From assembly GCF_011386835.1 (NCBI RefSeq), contig NC_088804.1:25172001-25236000 (forward strand): a DNA stretch of 64,000 bases, written 5' to 3'. Position 1 is the first letter of the stretch, and each line of letters starts with the position of its first letter. Shown one piece after another: positions 6,038-53,650 of the stretch. The DNA is from Chrysemys picta bellii. Taxonomy: Eukaryota. Below the pieces are notes generated by a model. The model searched no databases and was not told the DNA's origin. It saw only the letters and a list, made by a program, of their open reading frames with translations. Position numbers and translations under genes: made by a program.

Positions 6038-6449
6038 CAGGGCGGCTTTAGCAAGTGCGGGGCCTGATTCCTGGGGCGGCACTTCGGATTGCCAGTTGGG
6101 GGTTGCAGGGCCGTGGGGCTGCTGCGCTCCGGCTGGAGCTCCAGCCGGGAGAGCGGGACTGTTGTGCTCCGGCTGGGGTCGTGGGGCTGCCGCAGTCTGG
6201 CCAGAGCTCCAGCTGGGGCCGTGGGGCTTGCCGCGCTCCAGCCAGAAGAGCGGGGCCAAGGGTCTTGCCGCGCTCCGGCCAGGGTCATGGGGCCATGAGG
6301 CAGCCGCGCTCTGGCCGGGGTCGCGGGGCCATGGTGCTGCCACACTCCGGCCAGAGTTCTGGCCAGGGGAGCGGGGCCCCCGAAGACGACCGCCGCCGGG
6401 GTGAGTGCGCGGGGCCCGATTCCAGGGAATAGGCCTAAAGCCGGCCCTG
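6038..6449. mobile_element. GC-rich hAT-type MITE with internal ~30-bp tandem repeats
   Basis: termini cagggcggctttag ... ctaaagccggccctg are inverted repeats; TSD degraded. Confidence 0.7.
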
Positions 6450-7120
6450 CGTGGGAGAGTCGAAGCCGGTGGCCTGCGGGCTGGGGGCCAGCAGCCGCTG
6501 CTGAGGTTCAGATGCCGGGCGGGGCGAGAAGCGGCCCATGGTGTCCTGGCGGTGGGTTAATTGCTCCAGTGTTGGGGAGGCGCCGAAATCCCCGCGAGGC
6601 GTGGGCACGCGGCTGGTGGTGCGTGCGGTACCCGCTACAGCTATGACAACACATATAGCAACCCTCCTGTTTTGCAACTAGGTGCAGTTTCCGTCATGCA
6701 ACTTGACCATCTGGACTACTGCTCAGGACTTGCTACCGCCTGGTCCATGGGGTTGCAAATCAGGAGGGATGGGGTATGTGGTCAAAAACACTCACGATCT
6801 GCTTCCTCCTGGGTAATGTGACAAATTGATCTATTGGATGATTGAGGCGCGCTGTTTCACTTTTTTGTGTGTGAATATGTGAAAAGGGAGGTAAGGTTTG
6901 GGGGTACGGAGCCTGCTCCTGAGCCCAAGGTGATACCACTTTCATTTTTTTAATTTACTTTTATAATTTGCATTATACACGTGGACACAAATACAGAGAA
7001 TAATTTTTTCAAATAAAAAACATTTATTATAATAATCTGGTATATACATTAAAAAGTCTTTTGGTTGCATTATGTTTTGAACAAGAAGCATTTAAACAAT
7101 TTTTTTTGTAAAGGAGTGCA

Positions 7121-10100
7121 CTATGCACATTTTTTGCAGTTGTACTCTTTCTTCTCATCTGTCAGGTTTTCTTGATTGGTTCCTTCTGTAATGCAGGGCA
7201 TATGTGCCCACCTCTTGCAAGAATCACACTGAACCTTTGATAAGTAACAATTAAGAAATGAAATCACAGAAGTTATAATGTTACACATACTTTGCATTCA
7301 CTCATGCTATTCCTTCCACATGTCAGCATTACCTAACATATGTATGCCTATCAGCATGAAGAAAATGTTTACTGATGTGGAATTTTTACAAGAATCATGA
7401 TCCTTAGGCAGTTTATGGCATTTATTTCTCATACAATTCTATGTTTCTTACCATCGTGCTATCCTCACTTTCCTTTTTACAGTTGACAAGGTTGCACTAT
7501 ATGCAATAGTCCTCCACGCTTTCTTAAAAATAAATATAGCATTATGAAATGATGAATACGTTACAACCAACACTGAAAATGCAAATCTTGATTTATTAAT
7601 TAATGTCAATATTTTAATCCAGACATTGGTTTGAACATATCTTTTTCCTTTTTGTGAGTCATATTTTCTCAAATTTTTACTTTACTGCACCTGTATCTAA
7701 AAATGCCAATTTCATTTAACTGGTCGATCAATAGCAATCATTCACCCCCATTCAAATGTTTGTGTACTTAAAGATATTATTGATCCATAGTCACCATTAC
7801 AGAACCAAACCTGTGAGATATCCCACTTTAGGGGTATAAAGATAACTGTCTGCTATGTGACATAATTCCACTCTTCATGTTATCTTCACATGTGCCTAAT
7901 GAGTCCACAGTACATGGTAGAAAGTAATTACCTGCCTCCTTCATTAGAAGAATTGCTATATGTCTTCTAAATGCAGTATTAACCTCTTGTGTTGTTTCTA
8001 CCATACTGATGTCTTTGTGCTGCAAATATGTTTCTGCAAACTAACAACACTGATATTTAGAATAAACATCATAATTACCAGAGGTGAAAGTGGGCCGGTT
8101 CAGCATACCGGTAAGAACCGGCCACTGGTACCGGCCCGTACACAGCTGACGTTACACTTCCGCTGTGGCAGTGCTTTATGTTTTAACATCGCTGTCCCCT
8201 TTAGGTCCTCCCTCCCCCACATCAGCGGCCCTGCCATAGGGTCCGGCAATGCTGTTGGATGCTCCTGGCAGGGCTGCCGACAGTGGGGGAGCAAAAGGGG
8301 CCCTGGGTTCCTGCAATTTACAAGGGCCTGGTGCTCCTGGCCACTGCAGCAGCAGCTGTCAGGAAGGGCTGGCTGATGGAATCTGGCCCCCCCAGCACTG
8401 CACCTTCTGCCAGAGACCCCCATCCCTTCTGGGGGCCACAAGCCCAACCCACACACCTTGGCAAGAAGGCCGGTGTAGTGCCCACTGGTAATCTCTGGCA
8501 TTTACTTTCACCCTGGATAATTACACATACATAACAAATGATAATGGCAATGTGGTATTCAATACCTTTAAGATGAGTGGTCCGCAGTTGTGACCATCAC
8601 TTTGTCTGGGGTGCTGAGCAATTTTACTCTTCCAATCAGATGAGGATTTGCTAGTTAATCGTTTGATGAAGTTTCTGAAATTTTTAGAGAGTACATTAGA
8701 GGACTGCATAAATGAGCTTTTCTTTCTTTCCTCCACCCCCCCCCCCCCCAGCCCACCTCCGCTTTCTGGACATGTATACAAATCCATTCTATCTCTTTTT
8801 AATTAATGATTGAAATGACTTATTGCTCACATATATACACACTTGCTTTCATATTATTGTCTCACTCTTACACAATGTATCACCTGATTTGCTGTGCCCC
8901 ATTTTGATAACAGATTCTCAATCATGCAACATGCTACTGTTTCGTGTCCACATTCTGTGAAGTCGTTTCCCAGAGTCCAATCACACAAGTTCACTCAAAG
9001 TCCATTACTAGGCATATTCAGTACAAGTATATGCTGTTTCAATATTTATTTGTAGCTGACAGAAAGATATTAGTCTCACTATTGTTACATTCCCTTTAAA
9101 AAAATGTCCACTGTAAAAGTAAGTATCTAATAAATCACCTCCAATTCCTCAGACATGTTCTTTCATATCTCATCTCATCTCATCACACAAGGGGTCAATT
9201 ATTAACAATTCCTTTTTTTTCATCAAGGCTATCTGTAAGTGTAAATATATTCACAAATTATATTGGTAATGTGATCATTTCAAAATTTTTATCAAAAATC
9301 ATTATGCAATTAACATATTCTCGTTTGTAATGTCTCAGTAATACACAAGAGAAAAACATATTGTGAAATCATTGATCAATTCATTACAGAGTGTATTCTT
9401 CCAAGTTACATTAACAACGTAACTTGACAGTAGCATTTTATTTTTAACATTCACATTCCACTTTCCTTTGCATGCACTGAACTCACTGAAAACCCGCAAC
9501 ACGGGAAATTATATCACTGCTACTATAGTTGTGTTACAAATCGCTTATTTAATACCACATTTATTGCCCATAATCCAGAAGTACAATACAAAACATCTTA
9601 CCGCAAGAACCCAATGACCCGGTGTGTGGTAAGGAAGTAATAATATATCATTTTGAAGTAATTCACTCTGTATTTATTAAAAAAAAAATAGAAATGCAAT
9701 TATAGTTTCCAGTGAAGCAAACAATGAAATGTACATTATACTGTAATTCCCAATTTCATTACATGTATTACTATTAGAGTACTCCTCCACATCAAACATA
9801 GAGTTGTATTTGCTGTTTCACACTGTGTTTAACTCACATGAATGAAATTGTGCTTTGCTCACCTCATTTGTGGAGCTCTGCCTGAGAGAATGACAGTGGA
9901 AACTACTGATGAGATGGCTTGTACCTGTTGACAGTCAACAAAGTTATTAATGCATTAATAATTCTGGCACATCAAGAAAATAATGAATTTAATATAGACA
10001 GACATGCAAGGGACAGTTAGTGTTACAAATCAGATATGCAAGAGAGTCCTGTAAAAACAAAAAGATTTGTAATCAATGTGCTCTGTCTTACTTAATGTAA

Positions 10101-10445
10101 AAACGGACTAAGCTGTTCGCATACTTGTGTTTAATGGACACACTGAACTGTACAGCAAACTGTACAGCCACTAACTGTGGCCCTCAGTTAGTTAAGTATT
10201 GTATGTCCAATATGCACCTCCAAATACATTTCAGTAAATGTTTGGCAGCAGTAAATACACTGAAATGTTGCTATTTCAGGTTTATGTTGATATTTCCAGG
10301 GTATTTGGACTTAAATATGTTGTGCCACATATTCACGTGATTGTTTACTTATTGAATCAATGTATACTTTCATGTACCATCACAGTACGTAGCCTACCTT
10401 TCCATCTACTTTCTCCACCACACATCTCAAATATGCATCAATAAT
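7121..10445 (-). pseudogene. 8-exon relic gene: Ulp1/SENP-like peptidase C48 domain plus C-terminal PHD finger, 5' part missing; probably DNA-transposon derived
   Basis: Minus-strand exons 10445-10398 (IIDAYLRCVVEKVDGK), 9924-9863 (VQAISS...PQMR), 9667-9602 (DILLLPYHTPGHWVLA), 9232-9139 (LLIIDPL...LRNWR), 8674-8566 (HPRQSDGHNCGPLILK), 8040-7932 (FAETYL...FRRHIAILL), 7522-7452 (EDYCI*C), 7234-7121 (VQCDSCKRWAHMPC...CKKCA*). All 7 introns are GT-AG. Lesions: 1-nt deletion, 5-nt insertion, one in-frame TAG. AATAAA on the minus strand at 7023-7028. Confidence 0.88.
8079..8516. mobile_element. hAT MITE inside an intron of the Ulp1-PHD relic
   Basis: TIR cagaggtgaaagt / actttcaccctgg; 8-bp TSD ataattac (8071-8078 and 8517-8524). 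Confidence 0.85.
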
Positions 10446-11427
10446 CTACAACACATGATGAAAGAAAAGGCACAGTTTCAATAATATTTGATGAATCAAT
10501 CCCGTTAACAAATAACCAGACAGAGACCACACAGATAAACAATAGAGAAATGGGGAGCAGTAAATAAATCACCATGATTACAGGCATACAAACCATTTAA
10601 GAAATGACTATACAGTTATTGTAAAGATTCTTGATTATTCATGCAGTCAGCCAGGAAGACCATTAGTATTTGTGTACTTTTACCAGATTTGCCCATTACT
10701 TGGGGTATGCTCATTGTTTGGGTTTTTCCCCCCTGATAAGATGAGGGGCCTAGCAAAGTTGAGGTTCATCTGTTTTTCCTCCAGAATGTCCTGAAATCTT
10801 CAATGATACTGTGCTCTGTTTGGAAAATGAGAGTATGACAGCATGTGAAGTGTATGCCATAATGAATACTCTGAGAATTAAACTTCAGCAACGGAAAAAT
10901 GACATATTCTTTGGCTCTAAAGTTGAAAGTGCATTAACTGAGATGCTGCCTGTCACTGCTGCATGTCTCCAGAAAGACTTCATGAAATTTTACTATGTGT
11001 CGATCCTATATTTGGAGAAATGGTTTGATTTTTCAACAACTGGCTACTTGTTCAATACCCAGTTCTTGAACATCAAAGTTAATAGGGTATTCGAATTCAA
11101 CGATCTGCCTGCAGTCGTGACAGCTGTAAACCTTCAGAAAACAGTGAATCTTGATCAGCTCTATGATGAGTACTGTATCATAAAAGACAGTGACTCCAAG
11201 TACGAGCCTGGAAACTATTCAGTTGGGGAACTCTGGTCTCAGGTGCTGAGAAACAAGGACAGTAGAACTGAATTCGTGAACATGGCAAAGCTGGTGTCAT
11301 ACGTGCTCAGTATACCCGTAAGCAATTCATACTCAGAGCGTGTATTTTCAATCATGAAAGGTGCATGGACTGATGTCCAGAATCGAAGCAGCATAGACTT
11401 GGTGTGGAGTGAAACCCTTATCAAAAT

Positions 11428-11624
11428 CAACAGAGGGTCCTGTGGCACCTTTAAGACTAACAGAAGTATTGGCGCATAAGCTTTCGTGGGTGAATGCTTG
11501 CGTCTGATGAAGTGGGCATTCACCCACGAAAGCTTATGCGCCAATACTTCTGTTAGTCTTAAAGGTGCCACAGGACCCTCTGTAGCTTTTTACATATTCA
11601 GACTAACACAGCTACCCCTCTGAT
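11428..11624. mobile_element. Penelope-like (Neptune-type) retroelement-derived palindromic insert
   Basis: perfect 68-bp inverted arms 11430-11497 and 11516-11583; 12-bp TSD ccttatcaaaat / ccttgtcaaaat; same family as 23468, 37201, 40261 and 48502. Confidence 0.8.
11504..11541 (+). ncRNA. minimal hammerhead-ribozyme-like core (CUGAUGA-A-GUGGG/CCCAC-GAAA-GC uuau GC), cleavage triplet mutated
   Basis: catalytic-core motifs and stem II seen directly; Penelope-like elements are known to carry minimal type I hammerheads; U16.1 is G here, so probably inactive. Confidence 0.5.
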
Positions 11625-12072
11625 CCTTGTCAAAATGAATTTCCGGATGAGTTGCAAGGACTTCTACGTCTTTGTGATTGCCCAGAAGCAAGTCATGACT
11701 ATGGCAAAGTCATCCAAGAAGTACTAGACTTCTGGCATATCTGAGAGGTATGCAAATTGGGAAGTTGATTTATTGACTGAATAAAAAAATCCGGCCTTTA
11801 CCCCTGTTGTTTGTTTAGTGTACAAATAAATCTGTATGTTTAAATATGTATTACGACTAAGTCTATAATTTACACTCACTGATTCCAGACCTCTGTGATG
11901 TAGTTTGCTTCAGCTGTCCGTGGCTGAAGCTGGGGCTGAAGGCAGGACTGGGGGCCTCCCCTCTGTGACTGTGGCTGAAGCCAGAGCTAGAACCGGGACC
12001 CTTTGCTCCCCTGCCCTGCAACTGGATCTGACTTTGCAACCAGGATCCTGCGCCCCTGCAACTTCAGCCGAA

Positions 12073-12537
12073 GGGGGGGGGGCGGTGGGCACGGCTGGAG
12101 GAGCGAAGGGGCCGGCTCCTCGGCCATCGCGCCCCACGCTCAGCGCGGCCCCAACGTCGCCGCGGCTGCCTCCTGCGACGGCTCAGGGCTCGGCAGCTGA
12201 GCGCTCCACAGCTGGCGGGCAGATCTCCTCTCCCTGGCAGCTTCCTGCTTCCCTCGGCCCGGGCAGCCCAGCATTAGCAAGGGGTGGGGACCCCGCCCCT
12301 TGCTAATACTGGGCTGCCCGGGCTGAGGGAAGCAGGAAGTTGTGGGCTGCCCGGGCCGAGGGAAGCAGGAAGCTGCTGGGGAGAGGAGATCTGCCCGCCA
12401 GCTGCGGAGCGCTCGGCCGCCGAGCCCTGAGCTGCCGCAGGAGGCGGCTGCGGCGACGTTGGGGCCGCGCTGAGCGTGGGGCGCGATGGCCGAGGAGCCG
12501 GCCCCTTCGCTCCTCCGGCTGCGCCCGCCACCCCCCC
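12073..12537. repeat. CpG-rich long imperfect palindrome (about 210-bp arms)
   Basis: 12073-12284 is the reverse complement of 12296-12537 except for a ~27-bp tandem duplication in the right arm; hAT-like terminus cctagctacactactg at 12665-12680. Confidence 0.8.
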
Positions 12538-15500
12538 AATGGCTCCTCTGGAGTTGGGCTGTGCTGCCCGCCCTCCCCCTTGCCTGCAGGATCCCAGTGC
12601 TGGCCTGGCAGGTGCCGCTTTTGAAAAATGTGCTGAGGGGAAGCAGCTGTTTCCCCTGAACACCCCTAGCTACACTACTGCATTGAGCATGAAATGAGCT
12701 TTAACAATCTGTTGTGACTACTTACATTAAAGAAATCCATTCTACCTTGGTTTAGGAGAGAGACCACTGATTGACCAATAAGAATCTGGTGTTGCAGATC
12801 CCCATAGTGCAATTATTTTTTCTTCTCCATTGTCAGTGCAGCTTTTATTTTGGTGAGTTTTGCACACAGATGCAGAAATGTGGACTTGCGCATCCAAAAG
12901 TTCTGCAGCCCCTGGTCATGAGCCCAAGCCTTCATTCTTGTAGAAGATTTTTGCCCTTGGGAAGGATGTAAGATGACACCATATAATACACTTACTGAAT
13001 ATTTGTGAATCAGCTTCTACACACAAGCAATGACATGTGAACATGGGACTGTAAGGGCTGAATTCACAGGCAAGATAAATGCAGCAAAAGGCAATCCTAA
13101 AATTTGTGAACTGTTATGAGACTTCACCTAGACAAATAGTTATGAGAGACTCTTTTAAATACTCAAAATGTGTGACGCAGAGTTTGATGGAATGTAGGGA
13201 AATTCTTTCACTGCATCAAGTCTCCTGTAGCAATAAAGTAGCACCGGGGCAGCAGGTTTTTATATTTTTTGGTGACATCCAGAAAAGGTCCAAGGGAGTT
13301 TTGCTGTGGGAGGGGGTTTGGGGTCTGTACCGGGTTTACAATGGTGCCAATGGTGCTGTGGCACCAGGCCCACCCTGGGAAGGGGCCCATTACAGACCCC
13401 TGTAACCCATCCACATAGCTGGGTCTGGCCCCTCGCCTGGGGCAGTCCAGCACACAGGCCTTGCTGTCTTTTCACTGCAGACTTTGATCTTGGTGACAAA
13501 TCTGTAGAGAATTATGAAACTGGTCTAGGGGAGATAATGTCTCAGTATAAAACACTGGAAAGCTGTAAAAAAGTTGAAGGCTACTATACGCTGGCATTGA
13601 TCTATGTGCAGAACTCTCATGGACATCATTGGTTTTGTGCAAAAATTTAAGATAGAACGTTAAAGACTTTTTTTTTTTTAAAGAGAGAAATACTTTAGTG
13701 CACTCTTTTATACATAAAGTGTACTCATTTCCATGAGACCCAGAAGTGTGACAGATACTGTGGATCAGATACAGGGCTGTATCTAAACTGTGCTTAGTGC
13801 AGTTTGTGAAGAAAAGCGGGGTAAAGGTGCTTTAAGGTGCCAGTTATGTGTTCTGCGTCTCACTGCTGACTAGCTGCAGACCCAGTGCTCAGAATTAAGC
13901 AGTGTTCTCAGGGCTACTGTACTCTATACTAGTTTTCAATTGCCTGCTAAATCCTTCAGCCATGCCACCTTTTCACTTAGCTATATCCTGAATAGTGGTG
14001 ACGGGGGATGGGGGAGGGGGGCGGGGAGTCTAGCAGATGCCAATTTGAGGTGAATATTCTCTTGGCCAGATTCTGCCAGGTGCTTTGTGCTATGGACTGG
14101 AGCACAGTGGCTGGTGAATAACCAAGAGTCTGGTTAATAATTATTCTCTAAATTCATCTTTCTTCTTTCTCTCTCTCTGAATTATCACTAATTCAAAATA
14201 GTAGTGTGCAAGTTGACTGGATAATGGTAATAGCACAATCTCTTGTTATAACATTGTAAACCCTACTACCTGATTTTTATATTAAACACTTACTATACAT
14301 GATACAATAAATCTGACAGAAACAAAACCTAGGAAAAGTTTATTCTTTCTGTGTCTTATTTAAAATTTTCCAGTAATCTCCTCTTGCTTCAGAATGCCTT
14401 ATGCGTCACCCATACTGTTTGCAATAGGATTCAACCTGTGGCTTGGCTGCTGAGTCTTTACTGCTTCCTGAAGAGCTGGGAGCTCAATATTCATCTCAAA
14501 TAGATACTATATGCAGAAGCACAACTCAGTATATAGGGTGGTGGTGGGGGGAGAATTATTGACCTTTGTGCATATGTAATGGTGTTTGGTGTTTGTAAGG
14601 CAAGGTATAATAATCACACTTCCAAATTGCAATGAACTGTGGAAAAGTTCCTGTTTGGTGTGAGAGATGTTACTTATACTGTGTTGTAGAGATGTCTTCT
14701 GTTCTTAAAAAAAACCATGAATAAAGCTACTTTAAGGGAAATTACTGCTTTCTCCAACACCGAAGAGCTATGAGATCTTTGCTCACCAATTCTCATAAAA
14801 CTTGTATTTGTCATGCCTTTTTGGTGACTTTAGGATTACAATCTATTATGAATAAAGTACATTTCATTGATTGATTTTTAAAATGAAATTAGTAACTGGA
14901 AAAAATGGCCAGTATTTTTTTTTAATCCTGTGACAATTATAAACTACTGTATTCTGTCATTTACTTTCTAGAATCAAAAGTATATCTAAGTATAATCTAA
15001 AGTTCTCCTGCAAAATGCTGGCTGTGCAAACCCTTCCCTGGCTGGATCATTCTTGTGTTTTTATTTTAAGTACAAAATAAATATGTATAACGAATTTAAA
15101 AGTATGTAATTAGTAATTTGATATGTCGGGTGGTGCCTTTTTTTAATGTGTTCGCTCCCCTGATGTTAGAACTTGGCTACGCCACTGCTGTAGGGGGCTC
15201 ATTACCAGCAGCTGGGGGCCACCATGCGGGCTCGGCAGGGCTGCTGGACATGGGGCCAATGGGTGTAGGTGGACTCGGTGGGATCTTGGGAGTCACGTCC
15301 CAGGGATCTGCCCCGCTCCCCAGCACTGCTCCAGCTCTGAGCTGTCTCCACTGCCTGGGACCTGTAGGGCCCCACCTGCCTCCCCGGGGGCAGAGCCACC
15401 TGGGACTGGTGCAGAGGCTCGGCCAGTCTCAGACAGTCACAGGAGAGTGGGGGGGAGGGGAGGCTCAGCTGGGTTCTGCCAGGCATGTGGGTCCTGAGGG

Positions 15501-15630
15501 AGCCTGGTAGGCTCTGCTCCTGCTCCAGCCTGGCTGATCTCACCACTCCTAAGGGGCCGGAGTTATCCTGCCCCAGGACCAGCTCTGGCTGCGCTGCTGG
15601 ATCAGCCTGGCAGACACAGTCACCTCCCAT

Positions 15631-16390
15631 CAGGGCCGGCTACTGTGGCCGGGGATTAGGGTATGGGAGAGTAGGTCTCTAGTGGGTCTGGGGGGGGTGC
15701 TGGGCAGTGGGGGTTGGGGAGATCTGTGTGTGTCGAGGCGCTGGGAAGTGGGGGGGTGTCTGTGCGGGGCACTGTGCAGTTGTGGCGGTGGGGGGCAATG
15801 GGCAGTGAGGGGATCTGGGGGGGCTCTGGGTGGGGAGGTGTGGGGCACTGTGCAGTTGTGGTGGTGGTGGGGCATTGGACAGTGAGGGGATCTGTGGGGG
15901 GGTCTCTGGGCGGGGAGGTGCAGCGCACTGTGCAGTTATGGGAGGGCTGTGGGGGGTATTCAGCTAGGGGAGCACTGGGCAGTGAGAGGATCTGTGGGGG
16001 GGTTCTGAGTGGGTGGGGGAGTGGTCTGTGGGAGGGGGATTGGTGGGGGTGGTGGGGCACTGGGCATAGGAAGTCAGAGGGGTGCTGGGCAGGGGGGTAG
16101 CATGGTGCAGCATGGGCCCGCCCCCAAGGGGAAGAAGTGCCATGGCAGCGCAGGGCCGGGCTGCCCAGTGTGCATCTGGCAGCTCCCGGTTTGTACTGGG
16201 CTGGGTGGAGTGCCCTTGTACTGGGCTGGGTGGAGCGGGGCTGTCCCTGCCGTGCCATGACCCATCTCCCATTGCCCCCGGCCGGCCCCTCACTCTGAGG
16301 ACTCTTCCCCCCTGCCCCATGTCCCCATTTCCCCCATGAGGGCCCACAAATATGTTTAGCAGCGGGCCCACAAAAGGTTAATCCGGCTGT
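15631..16390. mobile_element. GC-rich hAT-type MITE with internal G-rich tandem repeats
   Basis: left end cagggccggc; truncated right end gggccccacaaaaggttaatccggc; internal ggggcactgtgcagttgtgg repeats. Confidence 0.55.
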
Positions 16391-16889
16391 TTTTGGGGTG
16401 CAGGCTCTGGGATGTAGTTGGGGTGCAGGAGGGTTGCAGGCTATGGGGAGTTTGAGTGAAGGGTGCAGGCTCTGACCTGGGGCAGGGGTTTGGGGTGCAG
16501 GAGGGGGTGCGGACATGTGGGCTCTGGGAGGGAGTTAGCAATTCAGCACATTATATAAGAGAAAGGAGCTGCAGTGATTTCATATAGACATGGAAACTGA
16601 TGGAAGACACTTTTACATATTCAAAATGTGAGAGGCAGAGTTTGAGGGAGGGGGTGTCTGTACAATATTTCACCGCATTCAGTCTCCTGGCTGGAGCAGT
16701 AACGTAGCCCCGCAGCCCTTGTATCAGACAGAGAGGAGCTGTGGTGTCTAAGCTTTGACAGTCTAGGAATTGGGCTGCTTATGCCTTTAAGTCCCCAGCC
16801 CCAGGAACCTGCCCTCTGCTCTGGGGCTGACATGCAGCGTCCTGTGAGCAGAACGAAAACAGCCTCTGCATCCTCCACACCCCTAGATT

Positions 16890-17520
16890 AGCGAGCACAG
16901 CACGTGGCTCATCCCGCGGGGTCACTGTTCCCCCCTCCCCCTCCCTAAACGGGGGTTTTGTCCCGCCAAGGGGTCTGACAGCGTCTCCCCCGGGGCTTAA
17001 CCTCGGCTACCACCCCCGATTTTTCCCCTTCAGCCCCTCTCCTGCCGCTACCTACAGTAGCTTGATACCCACCTGGCCAGTAAATTTCTGTCCCCTGCTC
17101 AGACCCTGACAGCCCCCCTGCTGCGATTTGCCCCCTTTGGTCCTTTTAAACCCCTCCAACGTGCAGGCAGCAAATCGTAAGTAGAATTAAAGGCAGAGAG
17201 AGGCCAGCGGCAACAGCGAAGATTACTGGGCATGCTCAGTTCGGGTGAGCATGCTCAGTGCACCCGAAGTAGGGAGCGGGGCAGCGTGACCGCTAGGGGC
17301 TCCCGTGAGTGGCGGTTACCTCAGAGCCAGGGAGATGGCCGGGGCGAGCGGCCGGGGGGACCCGCTGGCGTTGGAGGAGCCTCCCCTGCCCAGGCCCTCC
17401 CAGCCGGAGAGCCGCTTGGGTGACCAGGACGGGCTCGCGCAGGTGGGGGCGGGGAGCGGACGGTTTCCTGCCCGGGGGAAGGTGGTGCCCTGGCTGAGAA
17501 ACCGGGAGGGTGGGTGAGAG
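16890..17520 (+). promoter_or_regulatory. CpG island / promoter of WDR88
   Basis: GC- and CpG-rich island covering exon 1; GCATGC-centred palindromes at 17225-17257. Confidence 0.7.
17335..17442 (+). CDS. WDR88: WDR88 exon 1 (MAGASGRGDPLALEEPP...GDQDGLAQ)
   Basis: good Kozak context GAGATGG; CAG|gtgggg donor; DPLAL and GDQD match the recalled human sequence. Confidence 0.8.
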
Positions 17521-18145
17521 CCGGGGGGAGGGGTGTGACAGCTGGGGGAGGGGTGTCTCGGTACCTGGGAGTGGGGGTAAGAGCAGGGTGGGTGAGAGAC
17601 GGGATGTGTGTGTCTCAGTGCCTGGGGGGTAGGGTGAGTGAGAGTGCGTGTGCGTGTGTGTGTGTGTGTGGTGGTGGTGGGGGGGGTGTCTCAGTGCCTG
17701 AGGCAGGGATATGGGAGAGGCAGGTCTCAGGGGGCGGGTGGGAGAATTCTTTTGTGTGTGGGTGGAGAGGGTATCTCAGTGCCCCAAGAGTTGGGGGGAA
17801 TCAGTAGGAGCACTACTGGGATGAGCTGCAGACTGCCCTGTTCCTGTAGGGCCAATGCATGCCGGAGGCTGCTAGTTGGGGACAACTGGGACTATATGTT
17901 TTCTTCCACCACCTTCCCCCCATCTGTGGAAAGTATCGCCAGCCTAACCCTTCTTTGCTACCAGCAGGCTGACCTCTCCCCAGTGCTCATGTGCTCCTTT
18001 AATCTGCCTGCACCACAGTGATGTATTTGTGTATTACAAAACTTGGTTCATCCTCCCACTCAAAACACCAGTGCTCTTTGCAAAAAAACCTCTGCCCTTT
18101 TCTAGATTGTGGTAATAGTTCAACTGCATATTTCATTATGGTTTC

Positions 18146-19326
18146 TGTGACAGTGTACCCCATAAGGCTTTATGGGGGGGTGCTTATAAATGTATGTATG
18201 TTATAACTGGAATAGGGTTTTGCTACATATGCCATGTAACATATCTATGTAAAGGTTATGATCTACTGGTTATGTTCATCCTAGTTGTATGCAGGCACCA
18301 TTTGTGTGTTCAAAGTTATGAACATTGGCTGTATAATTGCTTGATTTCTAAGTAGCCTTAGTTAGAACATTTGATCACTTCTTGGGAAAGGAATGTGCAA
18401 ATTAGGTGCTCAGTCAGGAAGCACTTAACAGACAAAAGAGTTTGGAAGACTCCAGTTCACATAAGAAGTCTACCTGAGGACATTCAAAGTAGCATGTGGG
18501 TAACAGCTGCTACCTGCAAGTCCTGAGTCATGCATGGGCATGTGACTTGCCCATGTGATTCTGAATCTCCATTTTGTGACTGGATTCTACACAGGGTGAG
18601 GAGGGGGTCTCCACCCACAAGAGAAAGTCTATTTAAACCCCTGGGAGACCCCTCCATTGGGTCTTCAGCTGGCTAAAGAAGGAGCCTCTCCACCCCCTGC
18701 CCCCCAGGATACTTAAAGGAAACTGAAACAAAGGACAGTAACTACAGGGGGTGTGAGTAATTACTGGACCTAGGCTAAAAGAAGATTAGCCTGTAAAAGG
18801 GAGCATTCTGGAACTGGTGAGAATCTTATCTGTATTTAGTTTAATTAGATATAGATTTGTGCATTTTATTTTATTTTGCTTACTTTGTTCTGTCTGTTAC
18901 TACTTGGAACCACTTAAATCCTACTTTCTGTATTTAATAAAATCACTTTTTACTTATTAATTAACTCAGAGTATGTGTTAATACCTGGGGGAGCAAACAA
19001 CTGTGCATATCTCTCTATCAGTGTTATAGAGGGTGAACAATTTATGAGTTTACCCTGTATAAGCTTTATACAGGGTAAAACAGATTTATTTGGGTTTAGA
19101 CCCCATTGGATGTTGGGCATCTGAGTGCTAAAGACAAGCACACTTCTGTGAGCTGTTTTCAACTAAACCTGCAGCTTTAGGGCAAGTAATTTAGACCCTG
19201 CGTCTGTGTTGGAGCAGCAAGACAGGGTGCTGGAGTCCTGAGCTGGCAGGGAAAACAGGAATGGAAATAGTCTTGGCACATTGGTTGGCAGCTCTCAGGG
19301 GGGTTTCTGTGATCCAACCCGTCACA
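18146..19326 (+). mobile_element. solo LTR (about 1.18 kb)
   Basis: TGTGACA...GTCACA termini; 5-bp TSD gtttc/gtctc; internal TATA-like and AATAAA signals. Confidence 0.8.
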
Positions 19327-19719
19327 GTCTCATTATAATTAATATGCTATGCTGAAAGTGTTGTTAGTAACATACATACAATTGTCTGTGAAGACTGGAG
19401 GGGAACTTGTGTCAACCTATCCAGGAAAAGAAAGAAAAGCAAGAACAAGGCAGGTGTAATGTACTAAATTCTTAAAATACACAATTTATATTTTTAAATT
19501 GTTAATGTATTCATTGCTCCTGAAAGCAGAGGACTGGAAGTATCCTTTGTTACTTTGCATGTATAATGAACCACAATATAATATTCATGACAAATCAGAC
19601 AAACTCATTTAGCCTTTCTGATTATATCAGTTCTGAAGAACAGATACTGAACAGCAGTCAATACACTACCGTATGTCTATGAAAAAGATGCAGAAAAAAT
19701 GAACACCTGCTCAAGGAGG

Positions 19720-20981
19720 TTTGCAGTGGCACAGGATGAAGGCATAGTCTGAGTGATTATTTAAGACCAATTTAATCAAACAAAGGGTTCTTTTAATCCC
19801 AAGAGATTAGCCCACACAGCCAGGTCAATATGTAATTCAGATTTTACCCAATAATCACACTGTTGCCAATCCTTTAGTATCTAATATCTAAAGGTTTATT
19901 TATAAGAGAGAAGAAAGTGGGCAGAGTTAAAATGGTTAAGGAAAACAAATATATACACTCATTTCAAAGCAGTGATGTTACAGACTGCTGGCGTGTAAAG
20001 ACTCTGGTAACTTCCAAAAGATTGGAAGGTCCTTAGTCCATTGGTTGGAATGCGCCTTTTAGGGTAAGTCCATAGTCCAAAGATCAGAGCAGGAAAGAGC
20101 CAAAATGGAGATGCTTCCAGGGGTTTTTATACCTTCTCCCATGTGGAGGGAATTTTTCTCAGTCTTAGTTTGTGGAAAATTACAGGCACAAGATGGAGTC
20201 CAGGATCACATACAGAGGCAGATTAAGGTTTCTTGGGGTCCTGGGCCAGAGCAAGTGGGGGGGCCCCTCCCTACCCCTTCCACCTGAGGTCCTGTTCCTC
20301 CCTCCTCCACATGTGACCCTGCCCATGGCCCCACCCCTTTCTGCCCCTTCCCTATTCCACTCATGGTCCCCCCATTCTGCTCTTCCACCACTGTGGCCCC
20401 AAAACCAGATAAGCTCTCTGAAAGCTCCAGTCTTAGGGCTGCAGGGGGAGTCCCAGTGCTGGGACTTTCCCCACCCTGCTCCCGGCTGCTGATGGGGTCA
20501 GTGGGCACTGGGAGCTACCCACACTGCCACTCCCGGCGCTGCTTCCTGGGAGCGGGGTCAGGGCAGTGGGGCTTTTCCCATCCCTCTGGGACTCTGGGGC
20601 CCTTGGGCATGGGCCTCATAGCCCCAGTGGCTAATCCATCACTGGTCACATGCCCTTGCATGCTTCGATGACTAATAGGAATGGCTATTACCCATGTTTT
20701 GGCTAAAGTGTCCACAGAAAGACTCATGGGATGGGGACAAGCTTCTTCTGTGGCTCATTAAGAGTTAACTATTCCTTAATAGGCCATCAACGCATTTGAA
20801 ATACAGTCAATAGTCATACTTTTAGCTGCAAAGATGATACATGCAGACAAACAGGATAATCATATTTGATAGATTATAACTTACCTTACATGACATACTT
20901 TGTATAAGATTTGTTGCAATTGTCTAACAGTGGCAATATTAATTATATAAATGGTCATATTTCAATCATACAGCGTACACA
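19720..20981 (-). mobile_element. degraded LTR, reverse orientation, related to 18146-19326 and interrupted by a MITE
   Basis: minus strand begins tgtgtacgctgtatgattg and shares gtcatgtaagg/ttatgat-type segments with the upstream LTR; left boundary approximate. Confidence 0.5.
20213..20644. mobile_element. hAT-type MITE
   Basis: TIR cagaggcagatta / taatccatcactg; degraded 8-bp TSD atcacata/gtcacatg. Confidence 0.65.
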
Positions 20982-51835: not shown

Positions 51836-51909
51836 GGCGCCGTGGCTTAGTTGGTTAAAGCGCCTGTCTAGTAAACAGGAGATCCTGGGTTCGAATCCCA
51901 GCGGTGCCT
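51836..51909 (+). tRNA. tRNA-Thr (anticodon AGT at 51870-51872)
   Basis: full cloverleaf: acceptor GGCGCCG/CGGTGCC, anticodon stem CCTGT/ACAGG, T-loop GGTTCGAATCC; sequence matches the vertebrate Thr-AGT type as recalled. Confidence 0.98.
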
Positions 51910-51927
51910 ACGCGGGCCGGGCCCGCG

Positions 51928-51947
51928 TTTTGCCCCGGGGTATTTTT
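51928..51947 (+). terminator. Pol III terminator T-runs downstream of the tRNA
   Basis: TTTT at 51928-51931 and TTTTT at 51943-51947. Confidence 0.6.
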
Positions 51948-52158
51948 ATCTCCGCTCCCTCCCAGGACAGGGGCCGAACTGGCTGGTCCGGCGGGGCCGC
52001 TACTGCCAGTGGTTCAGCTGACAGCAGGAGAAGCAGGGTCTCCCCCTTCTCTTCCGGAGCCAGTGAACGCCCTGCCCGCAGCCATGATCCCGCGCTCCCG
52101 AGCCCTCCCCGGCCCCTGAGCCGCTTCCCAGAGTCCTTACAGTGCTTGGCCCCCGCTG

Positions 52159-53650
52159 GCTGTGCCGCGGCCGCGTAGTGCCGCCCCCTCCCTGCCCCAG
52201 CGTGCTGGGCCCTGTAGTGCCTCCCCTTCCCCGCTGTGCCGCGCCCGCGTAGTGCCGCCCCCTCCCTGCTCCCGTTTGCAGTGCCGCGCCCCGTGTAGTG
52301 CCCCCCCCGCTGTGCTGCGCCCCGCATAGTGCCTACCCCTCTCCCCTCCCTGCCCCCCGCCTGCTGCGCCCTGCGTAGTGCCTCCCCCTCCCCGCTGTGC
52401 CGCGCCCGCGTAGTGCCCCCACCGCTGTGCTGCACCTCGCATAGTGCCTGCCCCTCTCCCCTCCCTGCCCCCCGCCTGCTGCGCCCACGTAGTGCCGCCC
52501 CCTCCCTGCTGTGCCGCGCCCGCGTAGTGCCGCCCCCTCCCTGCTCCCGTTTGCTGTGCCGCGCCCCGTGTAGTGCCCCCCCCCGCTGTGCTGCGCCCCG
52601 CATAGTGCCTACCCCTCTCCCCTCCCTGCCCCCCGCCTGCTGCGCCCTGCGTAGTGCCTCCCCCTCCCCGCTGTGCCGCGCCCGCGTAGTGCCCCCCCCG
52701 CTGTGCTGCACCTCGCATAGTGCCTGCCCCTCTCCCCTCCCTGCCCCCCGCCTGCTGCGCCCACGTAGTGCCGCCCCCTCCCTGCTGTGCCGCGCCCGCG
52801 TAGTGCCCCCCTGCTGTGCTGCACCCCGCATAGTGCCTGCCCCTCTCCCCTCCCTGCCCCCCCGCCTGCTGCGCCCTGCGTAGTGCCTCCCCCTCCCTGC
52901 TGTGCCGCGCCCGCGTAGTGCCCCCCTGCTGTGCTGCACCCCGCATAGTGCCTGCCCCTCTCCCCTCCCTGCCCCCCGCCTGCTGCGCCCTGCGTAGTGC
53001 CTCCCCCTCCCTGCTGTGCCGCGCCCGTGTAGTGCCCCCCCGCTGTGCCGCGCCCCGTGTAGTGCCTACCCCTCTCCCCTCCCTGCCCCCCGCCTGCTGC
53101 GCCCACGTAGTGCCGCCCCCTCCCCGCTGTACTGCGCCCGCGTAGTGCCTGCCCCCTCCCTGCCCCAGTGTGCTGTGCCACATAGTGCCCCCCGCTGTGC
53201 TGCACCCCGCATAGTGCCTGCCCCTCTCCCCTCCCTGCCCCAGTCTGCTGTGCCGCATAGTGCCTCCCCTCCCCCCTCCCTGCTGTGCTGCACCCCGCAT
53301 AGTGCCTACCTCTCTCCCCTCCCTGCCCCCCCGCCTGCTGCGCCCTGCGTAGTGCCTCCCCCCTCCCTGCTGTGCTGCGCCCGTGTAGTGCCGCCCCCTC
53401 CCTGCTGTACTGCACCCGCATAGTGCCTGCCCCCCTCCCTGCCCCAGTGTGCTGTGTCACATAGTGCCCCCCTGCTGTGCTGTACCCCATGTAATGCCTA
53501 CCCCTCTCTCCTCCCGCCTCGTCTGCTGTGCTGCACCCCGCGTAGTGCCCCCCCGCTGTGCTGCACCCCGCATAGTGCCTACCCTTCTCTCCTCCCTGCT
53601 CCCCGCCTGCTGCACCCTGCGTAGTGCCTGCCCCCTCCCCGCTGTGCTGC
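52159..53650. repeat. GC-rich minisatellite (30-50 bp variants anchored on tagtgcc) with a ~275-bp higher-order period
   Basis: recurring gtagtgcc/atagtgcc units; the unique marker cccgtttgc recurs at 52271 and 52546. Confidence 0.92.

Follow-up and report, generated by a model that had tools for sequence, protein, structure and literature searches.

A 64-kb window of the Chrysemys picta bellii genome (64,000 nucleotides; contig NC_088804.1, positions 25,172,001 to 25,236,000) was analysed, in which eight minus-strand exons at window positions 7121-10445 encode part of a Ulp1-type (C48) SUMO protease and a PHD finger. We consider it highly probable (about 0.85) that these exons encode the C-terminal half of a transposase, within a dead copy of a turtle cut-and-paste transposon of the Ginger1 type. 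The exon structure is genuine, the copy is a pseudogene, it belongs to a family dispersed through turtle genomes, and in fuller members the same exons are linked to an integrase. The initial annotation of the window had proposed a remnant of a large spliced transposon pairing a deSUMOylase with a PHD reader, and both the dispersed copies and the integrase in the same gene bear this proposal out.

The Ulp1-PHD exons are joined to an integrase in fuller copies

The initial annotation had expected a transposase upstream of the Ulp1-PHD exons, and in fuller copies an integrase with rve, H2C2 and GPY/F modules was found joined to them in one gene. In the Gopherus copies L009, L010 and L011 (L numbers denote genomic copies, P numbers proteins), open exons continue upstream of the RefSeq start, far beyond the Ulp1-PHD exons, and in L011 all coding exons are open. 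The upstream order in Gopherus is an H2C2 zinc finger (…YHDSPEGGHLG…, …CLTCQ…), the DDE core, an exon encoding …PYHPQTNGLAEN… and a long GPY/F exon. The DDE-core exon of L011 matched Pfam rve with an E value of 5.6e-10, while the GPY/F module (…KYHGPYK…, …YRGPYKI…, then …LKP…) was recognised by inspection, with no profile. The GPY/F exon runs in one frame with an acidic linker, on to the methionine used as the RefSeq start.

Transcript-derived and annotated proteins showed the same linkage. P0188, a 510-aa protein from a 1.9-kb intron-less contig, matched Integrase_H2C2 (E 1.6e-19) and rve (E 5.3e-11), and its sequence overlaps that of P0186, which extends on into C48 (E 2.4e-12) and PHD (E 4e-5). 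Where a YPYY motif was sought, N-terminal to the zinc finger, exon i of P0188 reads …TTYPEG…. A single gene model of Pelodiscus sinensis (P0199) contains H2C2, C48 and PHD, and one of a cichlid, Astatotilapia (P0207), contains H2C2, rve (E 2.8e-15), C48 and PHD; related proteins were found in Poecilia, Oreochromis and the axolotl. In a quick maximum-likelihood tree, the turtle integrases, the fish integrase-C48 fusions and proteins automatically named GIN1-like formed a clade (SH-aLRT 99), and Gypsy integrases linked to a reverse transcriptase (RT), which are 25-29% identical, fell outside it.

A separate group of long proteins from Logan contigs (P0043, P0049, P0070 and others, about 1450 aa) is intron-less and matches the Ulp1-PHD query at the C-terminal end. 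P0043 has a YqaJ-like recombinase domain in place of the integrase, and another element type appears to carry the same kind of Ulp1-PHD tail.

Many copies lie at unrelated loci in turtle genomes

The dispersed paralogues that the initial annotation called for were found: the family is multi-copy across turtles and lies at unrelated loci, not single-copy and syntenic. The 88-aa open reading frame (ORF) around exon 5 matched six turtle proteins with 73-92% identity. Copies in Pangshura, Eretmochelys, Lepidochelys, Chelydra, Gopherus and Chelonia lie beside different genes and on different chromosomes; the Pangshura copy sits in an intron of the gene for a 1005-aa protein, the Eretmochelys copy 8.8 kb from a C-type lectin gene, the Lepidochelys copy (L003) between a butyrophilin-like gene and WBP11, and the Chelydra copies on two contigs. 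DNA identity among copies is 75-91% and runs through introns, and the window matches the copies at 75-89% over about 3.8 kb, exons and introns alike. Because the similarity extends through introns, the copies arose at the DNA level and not by retroposition.

When the Pangshura protein P0003 was compared with 1.84 billion representatives in a profile-free search, 203 matches were obtained, the best being a 350-aa RefSeq protein of Gopherus flavomarginatus named "sentrin-specific protease 1-like". In the 90% cluster of this protein, at least four loci of the same tortoise, spread over four chromosomes, are represented by their products, together with members from G. evgoodei, Terrapene, Mauremys and Natator, and at least five family loci are annotated in G. 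flavomarginatus. Relatives at about 55-58% identity occur in the pleurodire Emydura. Identity among the Gopherus copies L009, L010 and L011, which lie on different chromosomes, is 95-98.6%. Decay or internal deletion, differing from copy to copy, marks most of the family.

At the window locus itself, 33-72% of the 31-mers of the stretch were found in at least seven organisms. Such sharing is too high for paralogues at most 89% identical, which suggests that related species probably carry the same relic at this site.

In the Lepidochelys copy L003, part of the GPY/F-linker exon (9707-9997 of that locus) is inverted and abuts exon 3, unlike the rearrangement in the window. The gene models P0023, P0211 and P0203 are chimeric, with element pieces fused to host genes (TRIM/B-box, QPRT, finTRIM), and look like annotation artefacts caused by the repeat.

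The Chrysemys copy is a pseudogene

All eight minus-strand exons of the initial annotation are present, each with AG/GT borders, and the peptides quoted for them were found. Exon 1 in that numbering (10398-10445; IIDAYL…) corresponds to exon 9 of the full transposase gene. Exon 2 (9863-9924) is damaged at its 3' end and native donor when compared with intact copies, and the frame is lost there. Exon 3 (9602-9667) encodes the catalytic His (…PGHW…), exon 4 (9139-9232) the catalytic Asp (IIDPL), and exon 5 (8566-8674) the oxyanion Gln and catalytic Cys (…RQSDGHNCG…). The C-terminal helices of the Ulp1 domain are encoded by exon 6 (7932-8040) and the first CxxC of the PHD finger by exon 7 (7452-7522). 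Exon 8 (7121-7234) supplies the second half of the finger (CxxC-x4-H-x2-C...CxxC) and the stop codon, and its peptide is 86% identical to residues 314-350 of P0007.

The exons were compared with intact relatives by alignment, and three lesions were found. At the end of exon 2, native donor included, the sequence is rearranged and about 8 bp are missing; exon 4 has a frameshifting 5-bp insertion near 9167-9175; and in exon 7 the codon between both Cys of the first CxxC is TAG, as against TAC in intact copies. Splicing into one open frame, as first proposed, therefore fails, since two frame corrections (from exon 2 to exon 3, and within exon 4) are needed and one stop has to be crossed. The intron phases given earlier (0,2,0,2,0,1,0) are arithmetically impossible with a 66-nt exon 3, and intact relatives have 0,0,0,2,0,1,0. 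What had been called a hidden gene is a pseudogene without the integrase half and with the frame broken three times; no functional protein is made at this locus. A conceptual peptide, in which the spliced exons carry X at the breaks, was used for local comparisons, and the profile searches used single exons or database proteins. With this peptide, tblastn found no second copy within the 64-kb window.

Family members are transcribed and spliced

Contigs from public sequencing runs were aligned to window positions 6300-11600 at 90% likeness or more; such contigs show junctions, not expression level or copy number. Spliced contigs came from four runs (X1, X2, X17 and X18) and three organisms. Their junctions lie exactly at 7522>7932, 8040>8566, 8674>9139 and 9924>10398, and read CT..AC on the plus strand, equivalent to GT..AG on the minus. 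A contig of X1 contains the joint 7522>7932, and contigs of X2, X17 and X18 contain the joint 8040>8566; one contig omits exon 4. Contigs of X17 and X18 are without the 5-bp insertion of exon 4, and a spliced X18 contig has six extra letters in exon 2 relative to the window.

The contigs that lack these lesions of the window copy come from intact paralogues or orthologues and not from this locus. Since the spliced contigs skip the exact predicted introns, with their AG/GT borders, the exon-intron structure is real and did not arise by chance. These results demonstrated that members of the family are transcribed and spliced, and that spliced contigs use the predicted junctions, as the initial annotation had supposed spliced reads might reveal. 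A search for contigs encoding P0007, a minor isoform, gave none.

The exons encode a distant Ulp1 protease and a PHD finger

In profile searches, exon 8 by itself matched Pfam PHD (PF00628) with an E value of 2.7e-7 and a score of 30.9 bits, above the cut-off of 24. With exon 3 by itself the match to Peptidase_C48 was weak (E 0.094, 13 bits, below the cut-off of 20.7). P0156, an intact 366-aa Gopherus member, matched Peptidase_C48 (PF02902) with an E value of 4.4e-13 and 50 bits against the same cut-off, and its PHD match fell just below threshold (22.8 bits versus 24). The two profiles named in the initial annotation were thus both hit, PHD by the window's own exon 8 and C48 by the relative P0156, with window exon 3 alone remaining weak for C48. 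The conceptual peptide is 86.9% identical to Gopherus P0156/P0186 across all 227 positions, 62% identical to Pelodiscus P0199 and 35% identical to P0201, an 810-aa integrase-C48 protein of Poecilia.

Against solved structures, P0156 found SENP1 as its best match (E 1e-9), then SENP2 and Ulp1, down to E 5e-7. The phmmer alignment with SENP1 (2xph) paired GHW with VHW, IIDPL with YYDSM and RQSDGHNCG with QQMNGSDCG. The His-Asp-Cys triad and oxyanion Gln that had been read from the window were in this way matched to SENP1 through P0156, and the codons for all four residues are retained in window exons 3-5. The C4HC3 finger was likewise confirmed, with the spacing C-x2-C-x16-C-x2-C-x4-H-x2-C-x18-C-x2-C, exon 8 passing Pfam PHD and the window stop falling between the first two Cys.

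The family shares with SENP1, SENP2 and Ulp1 the fold family, the His-Asp-Cys residues, the oxyanion Gln and an aligned HW motif. It differs in being distant from them, as the E value of P0156 to SENP1 indicates, and in having an integrase and a PHD finger joined to the protease domain. No host SENP was seen among the best 150 of the 203 matches to P0003. By these comparisons the family is a distant C48 member and not a recent SENP paralogue. Intact members apparently have both tunnel tryptophans (…SWISDE… and GHW), as judged by eye against SENP1. With the catalytic residues present, the Ulp1 protease of intact members looks competent.

Ends of the element and structure of the relic in the window

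All seven copies compared at the 3' side (the window, L001, L009, L010, L011, L012 and L013) share a common 3' end, …ACA, after which the flanks diverge at once. In the window, the 3' terminal region (6642-6957, minus strand) holds about one unit of a 278-bp satellite-like repeat, and 6642 is the last base of the element (…GTCATA). The 278-bp period was given by TRF in Gopherus evgoodei L012, in which about 19 units (14687-19990) stand against about one in the window. Between this region and the stop codon lies a 3' untranslated region with AATAAA (6958-7120, minus strand), conserved in L001, L002, L003 and L007. The four bases 3' of the young Gopherus copies are CCGG in L009, L010 and L011 and CCTG in L012. 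L010, the only young copy with both ends, starts with TGTAACG, which is mirrored by CGTTACA at its 3' end, and the candidate 5' terminus in the window is GGTAAC at 17320, corresponding to TGTAAC in L010. The element measures from 11 to more than 18 kb and has about 16 exons, about 15 introns and a GC-rich 5' region. No direct repeat was found between the L010 ends, no RT-like ORF was found in L011 1-10200, and introns are kept in all copies. A reading as a retrotransposon with long terminal repeats (LTRs) was rejected, there being no LTR and no RT.

Alignment with the long Gopherus copy L011, and with L010 and L014, defined the remains in the window. Window 6740-10514 corresponds to L011 14444-10614, window 10514-10725 to L011 5422-5211, and window 12682-14614 to L011 4202-2769, while window 15231-17275 aligns with 5' region sequence in both L011 and L010. 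Junction 10514 joins L011 10614 to 5422, so that about 5 kb are lost, comprising all integrase exons and two exons preceding exon 1; similarity to L001, L002, L008, L010, L011 and L014 ends at window 10510-10514, and no part of the P0188 integrase sequence was found in the window. On the exon 1 side, a 69-bp intron remnant (10446-10514, minus strand) ends at the junction. On the other side lies a 212-bp piece (10514-10725, minus strand), 91-92% identical to and collinear with L011 and L009, which in the tortoise copies is placed upstream of the first coding exon. The GC-rich non-coding 5' region (12680-17320, minus strand) is collinear with L003, L010, L011, L013 and L014, with gaps at 13378-13874 and 14615-15189 and an approximate 5' end (17276-17320). 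As judged from these alignments, the relic spans about 6642-17320 on the minus strand, some 10.7 kb, and is internally deleted.

Between the 212-bp piece and the 5' region, foreign DNA occupies 10726-12679 and comprises a hAT fragment, a palindromic repeat and a GC-rich inverted repeat. This stretch is unmatched in the element part of other copies, and short high-copy repeat matches to it occur elsewhere in L002, L003 and L009. The hAT fragment (10811-11479, plus strand; repeat similarity begins at 10742) has a 222-aa open frame matching Dimer_Tnp_hAT (E 4.5e-6), lies 366 bp from exon 1, and is a 5'-truncated transposase piece nested in the Ginger-type relic; its head-to-head placement reflects this nesting and no functional pairing. 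The segment 11423-11590 forms a near-perfect palindrome with 75-nt arms, 97% complementary, and an 18-nt spacer. Its summed contig depth was thousands-fold over the surroundings in all four runs, and it is probably a very high-copy repeat, MITE-like or SINE-like. The GC-rich inverted repeat (12113-12500) has 158-nt arms, 94% complementary and 72 nt apart. Elsewhere in the window, long GC-rich ORFs on both strands at 51900-53500 derive from a Gly/Arg-rich minisatellite (…GGRGEGRHYAG…) and are not genes.

Discussion

Ginger1 transposases have a Gypsy-like integrase with a YPYY motif, zinc finger, DDE core and GPY/F module (Bao, Kapitonov & Jurka 2010, PMC2836005). At the C-terminus they carry an OTU or Ulp1 domain, and a PHD finger as well in Hydra Ginger1-9_HM (PMC2836005). 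The turtle gene resembles Ginger1-9_HM in its Gypsy-like integrase (zinc finger, DDE, GPY/F) followed by Ulp1 and PHD, and in the GT-AG introns within the coding region. The ends described for Ginger1 are TGTNR, with terminal inverted repeats (TIRs) of 40-270 bp and a 4-bp target site duplication (TSD) of CCGG or CCGT (PMC2836005). Likeness extends here to the 3' …ACA, to CCGG at the 3' side of three of the four young copies, and to the lack of RT and LTRs; the ends would be of the TGT…ACA type, with the 5' TGT seen in L010 only. Ginger1 was among the candidates named by the initial annotation, and the integrase-Ulp1-PHD architecture of the fuller copies agrees with it. We file the family as Ginger1-type; the architecture and the 3' hallmark fit, with a reservation for TIR length and TSD.

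In fuller copies the gene reads, in order, N-terminal region, H2C2, rve DDE core, GPY/F, acidic linker, Ulp1 and PHD. By homology, the integrase would mobilise the element by cut-and-paste. In active copies, the Ulp1-PHD tail might target SUMO or a related modifier at chromatin sites read by the PHD finger, and could there either assist integration or repair or, as the initial annotation proposed, blunt SUMO-dependent silencing. The conservation of the protease-reader tail from Hydra Ginger1 through fish to turtles argues that it benefits the element. The window copy lost its integrase through the internal deletion of about 5 kb at 10514 and gained foreign repeats, including the hAT fragment.

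Several observations weigh against this assignment. The TIRs and TSD anticipated by the initial annotation did not emerge: no long TIR was found in L010 or in the window, the inverted match between the L010 ends covers only about 9 of the first 11 bases, and there is no matching TSD pair, L010 as the sole copy with a candidate 5' end having GGGG on the 5' side and CCGG on the 3' side. A 40-270 bp TIR and a confirmed 4-bp TSD, as known from Ginger1, were not found here, L010 being the one young copy compared at both ends. The 5' boundary is fuzzy in old copies, and comparison of the window, L003, L010, L013 and L014 fixed no exact 5' end. Described Ginger1 elements measure 2.6-7 kb and have 0-4 introns (PMC2836005), whereas in turtles the length runs from 11 to over 18 kb and the introns number about 15; the turtle element differs further in its long GC-rich 5' region and 278-bp 3' satellite. 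The integrase tree had no bona fide Hydra Ginger1 or human GIN1 anchor, and the ATG of transcript P0188 is TTA in three long Gopherus copies. The 212-bp piece at the deletion junction also occurs twice outside the element, beside Chelydra L007 copies; it could be a small nested repeat in its own right, and the history of the junction is uncertain.

The explanation that survives best after a Ginger1-type transposon, and that we regard as improbable, is that the window holds a pseudogenised duplicate from a domesticated, Ginger1-derived host gene family that became multi-copy by segmental duplication and that, though akin to GIN1, would have retained Ulp1-PHD. A gene-like structure of about 15 introns, a GC-rich 5' region with GCATGCGC-type motifs, spliced expression in several species, RefSeq modelling of copies as genes and the lack of a proven TIR or TSD would suit such a family. 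However, segmental duplication does not readily account for seven copies that share an exact 3' end and then enter unrelated flanks, or for the scatter of copies over different chromosomes, where they lie within introns or between genes at unrelated loci. Decay and internal deletion have taken different courses in most of them, and the Gopherus copies retain 95-98.6% identity though they lie on different chromosomes. GIN1 and GIN2 are host genes derived from Ginger1 transposases. They have the same integrase type as the turtle family, and proteins automatically named "Gypsy retrotransposon integrase-like protein 1" are among its nearest named relatives (39-61% identity). To our knowledge, GIN1 and GIN2 are without the Ulp1-PHD tail; they differ too in being single-copy and syntenic, whereas the turtle family is multi-copy, dispersed and mostly decayed.

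A still less probable explanation makes the Ulp1-PHD exons the cargo or captured fragment of a Zisupton, MULE, CACTA, Helitron or the adjacent hAT element. Several other transposon superfamilies do carry Ulp1 domains (PMC2836005), a hAT transposase fragment lies close to exon 1, and the long proteins with a YqaJ domain have a similar Ulp1-PHD tail and no integrase. The adjacent hAT was rejected as the carrier, since its fragment is missing from all other copies. Ulp1-bearing MULEs, Zisupton and other such elements are likewise transposons with a C48 protease, but they have another transposase type; fuller turtle copies splice the exons to an rve/H2C2/GPY-F integrase in one reading frame, and the unit showed no transposase of any other kind. 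Of the candidates in the initial annotation, Zisupton and MULE/CACTA found no support.

An unannotated functional host SUMO-protease gene is next to impossible. All four catalytic codons are retained, and runs guessed to be RNA contain contigs identical to the locus; but the reading frame is broken twice and also interrupted by a stop, the C48 domain has lost its N-terminal third together with the exon holding the first tunnel Trp, and P0156 reaches its best structure match, SENP1, only at E 1e-9.

Ginger1 elements with Ulp1 and PHD were already known (PMC2836005), and the window feature is an ordinary relic. Ginger1 had previously not been found in sarcopterygians, according to PMC9004415, where protein relics are reported from turtle, alligator, coelacanth and frog; the supplement of that paper is without a Ginger1 table. 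The initial annotation knew of no such family described in turtles, and this holds in part. The searchable literature (Ginger with turtle, tortoise or reptile; Repbase stood outside the search) gave no description of the family, its structure or the young tortoise copies. On the other side, turtle protein relics of Ginger1 had been reported (PMC9004415), and intact copies already figure in RefSeq as gene models named "sentrin-specific protease 1-like".

For annotation, the locus is a dead transposon fragment, to be masked as a repeat and not annotated as a gene, and many turtle RefSeq models named "sentrin-specific protease 1-like" or "Gypsy retrotransposon integrase-like" appear to be pieces of the element that call for the same masking. 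For the family, the integrase-Ulp1-PHD architecture described in Hydra persists in vertebrates, in teleosts, the axolotl and turtles, and tortoises have young, transcribed copies where Ginger1 was earlier known in sarcopterygians only as protein relics (PMC9004415). We suggest, tentatively and with more doubt than confidence, that the turtle element represents a Ginger1 lineage of giant size and many introns, that it has moved recently in tortoise genomes and that it could still be mobile; recent transposition is proposed because the Gopherus copies are 95-98.6% identical, coding exons are open and spliced transcripts exist. If recent activity in tortoises were true, no earlier case of a recently active Ginger1 would be known from an amniote, and the element would offer a natural setting in which to ask why a SUMO protease and a PHD reader have been kept in transposases from Hydra to turtles. 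Through the conservation of the tail, the link between SUMO and transposon control becomes open to experiment.

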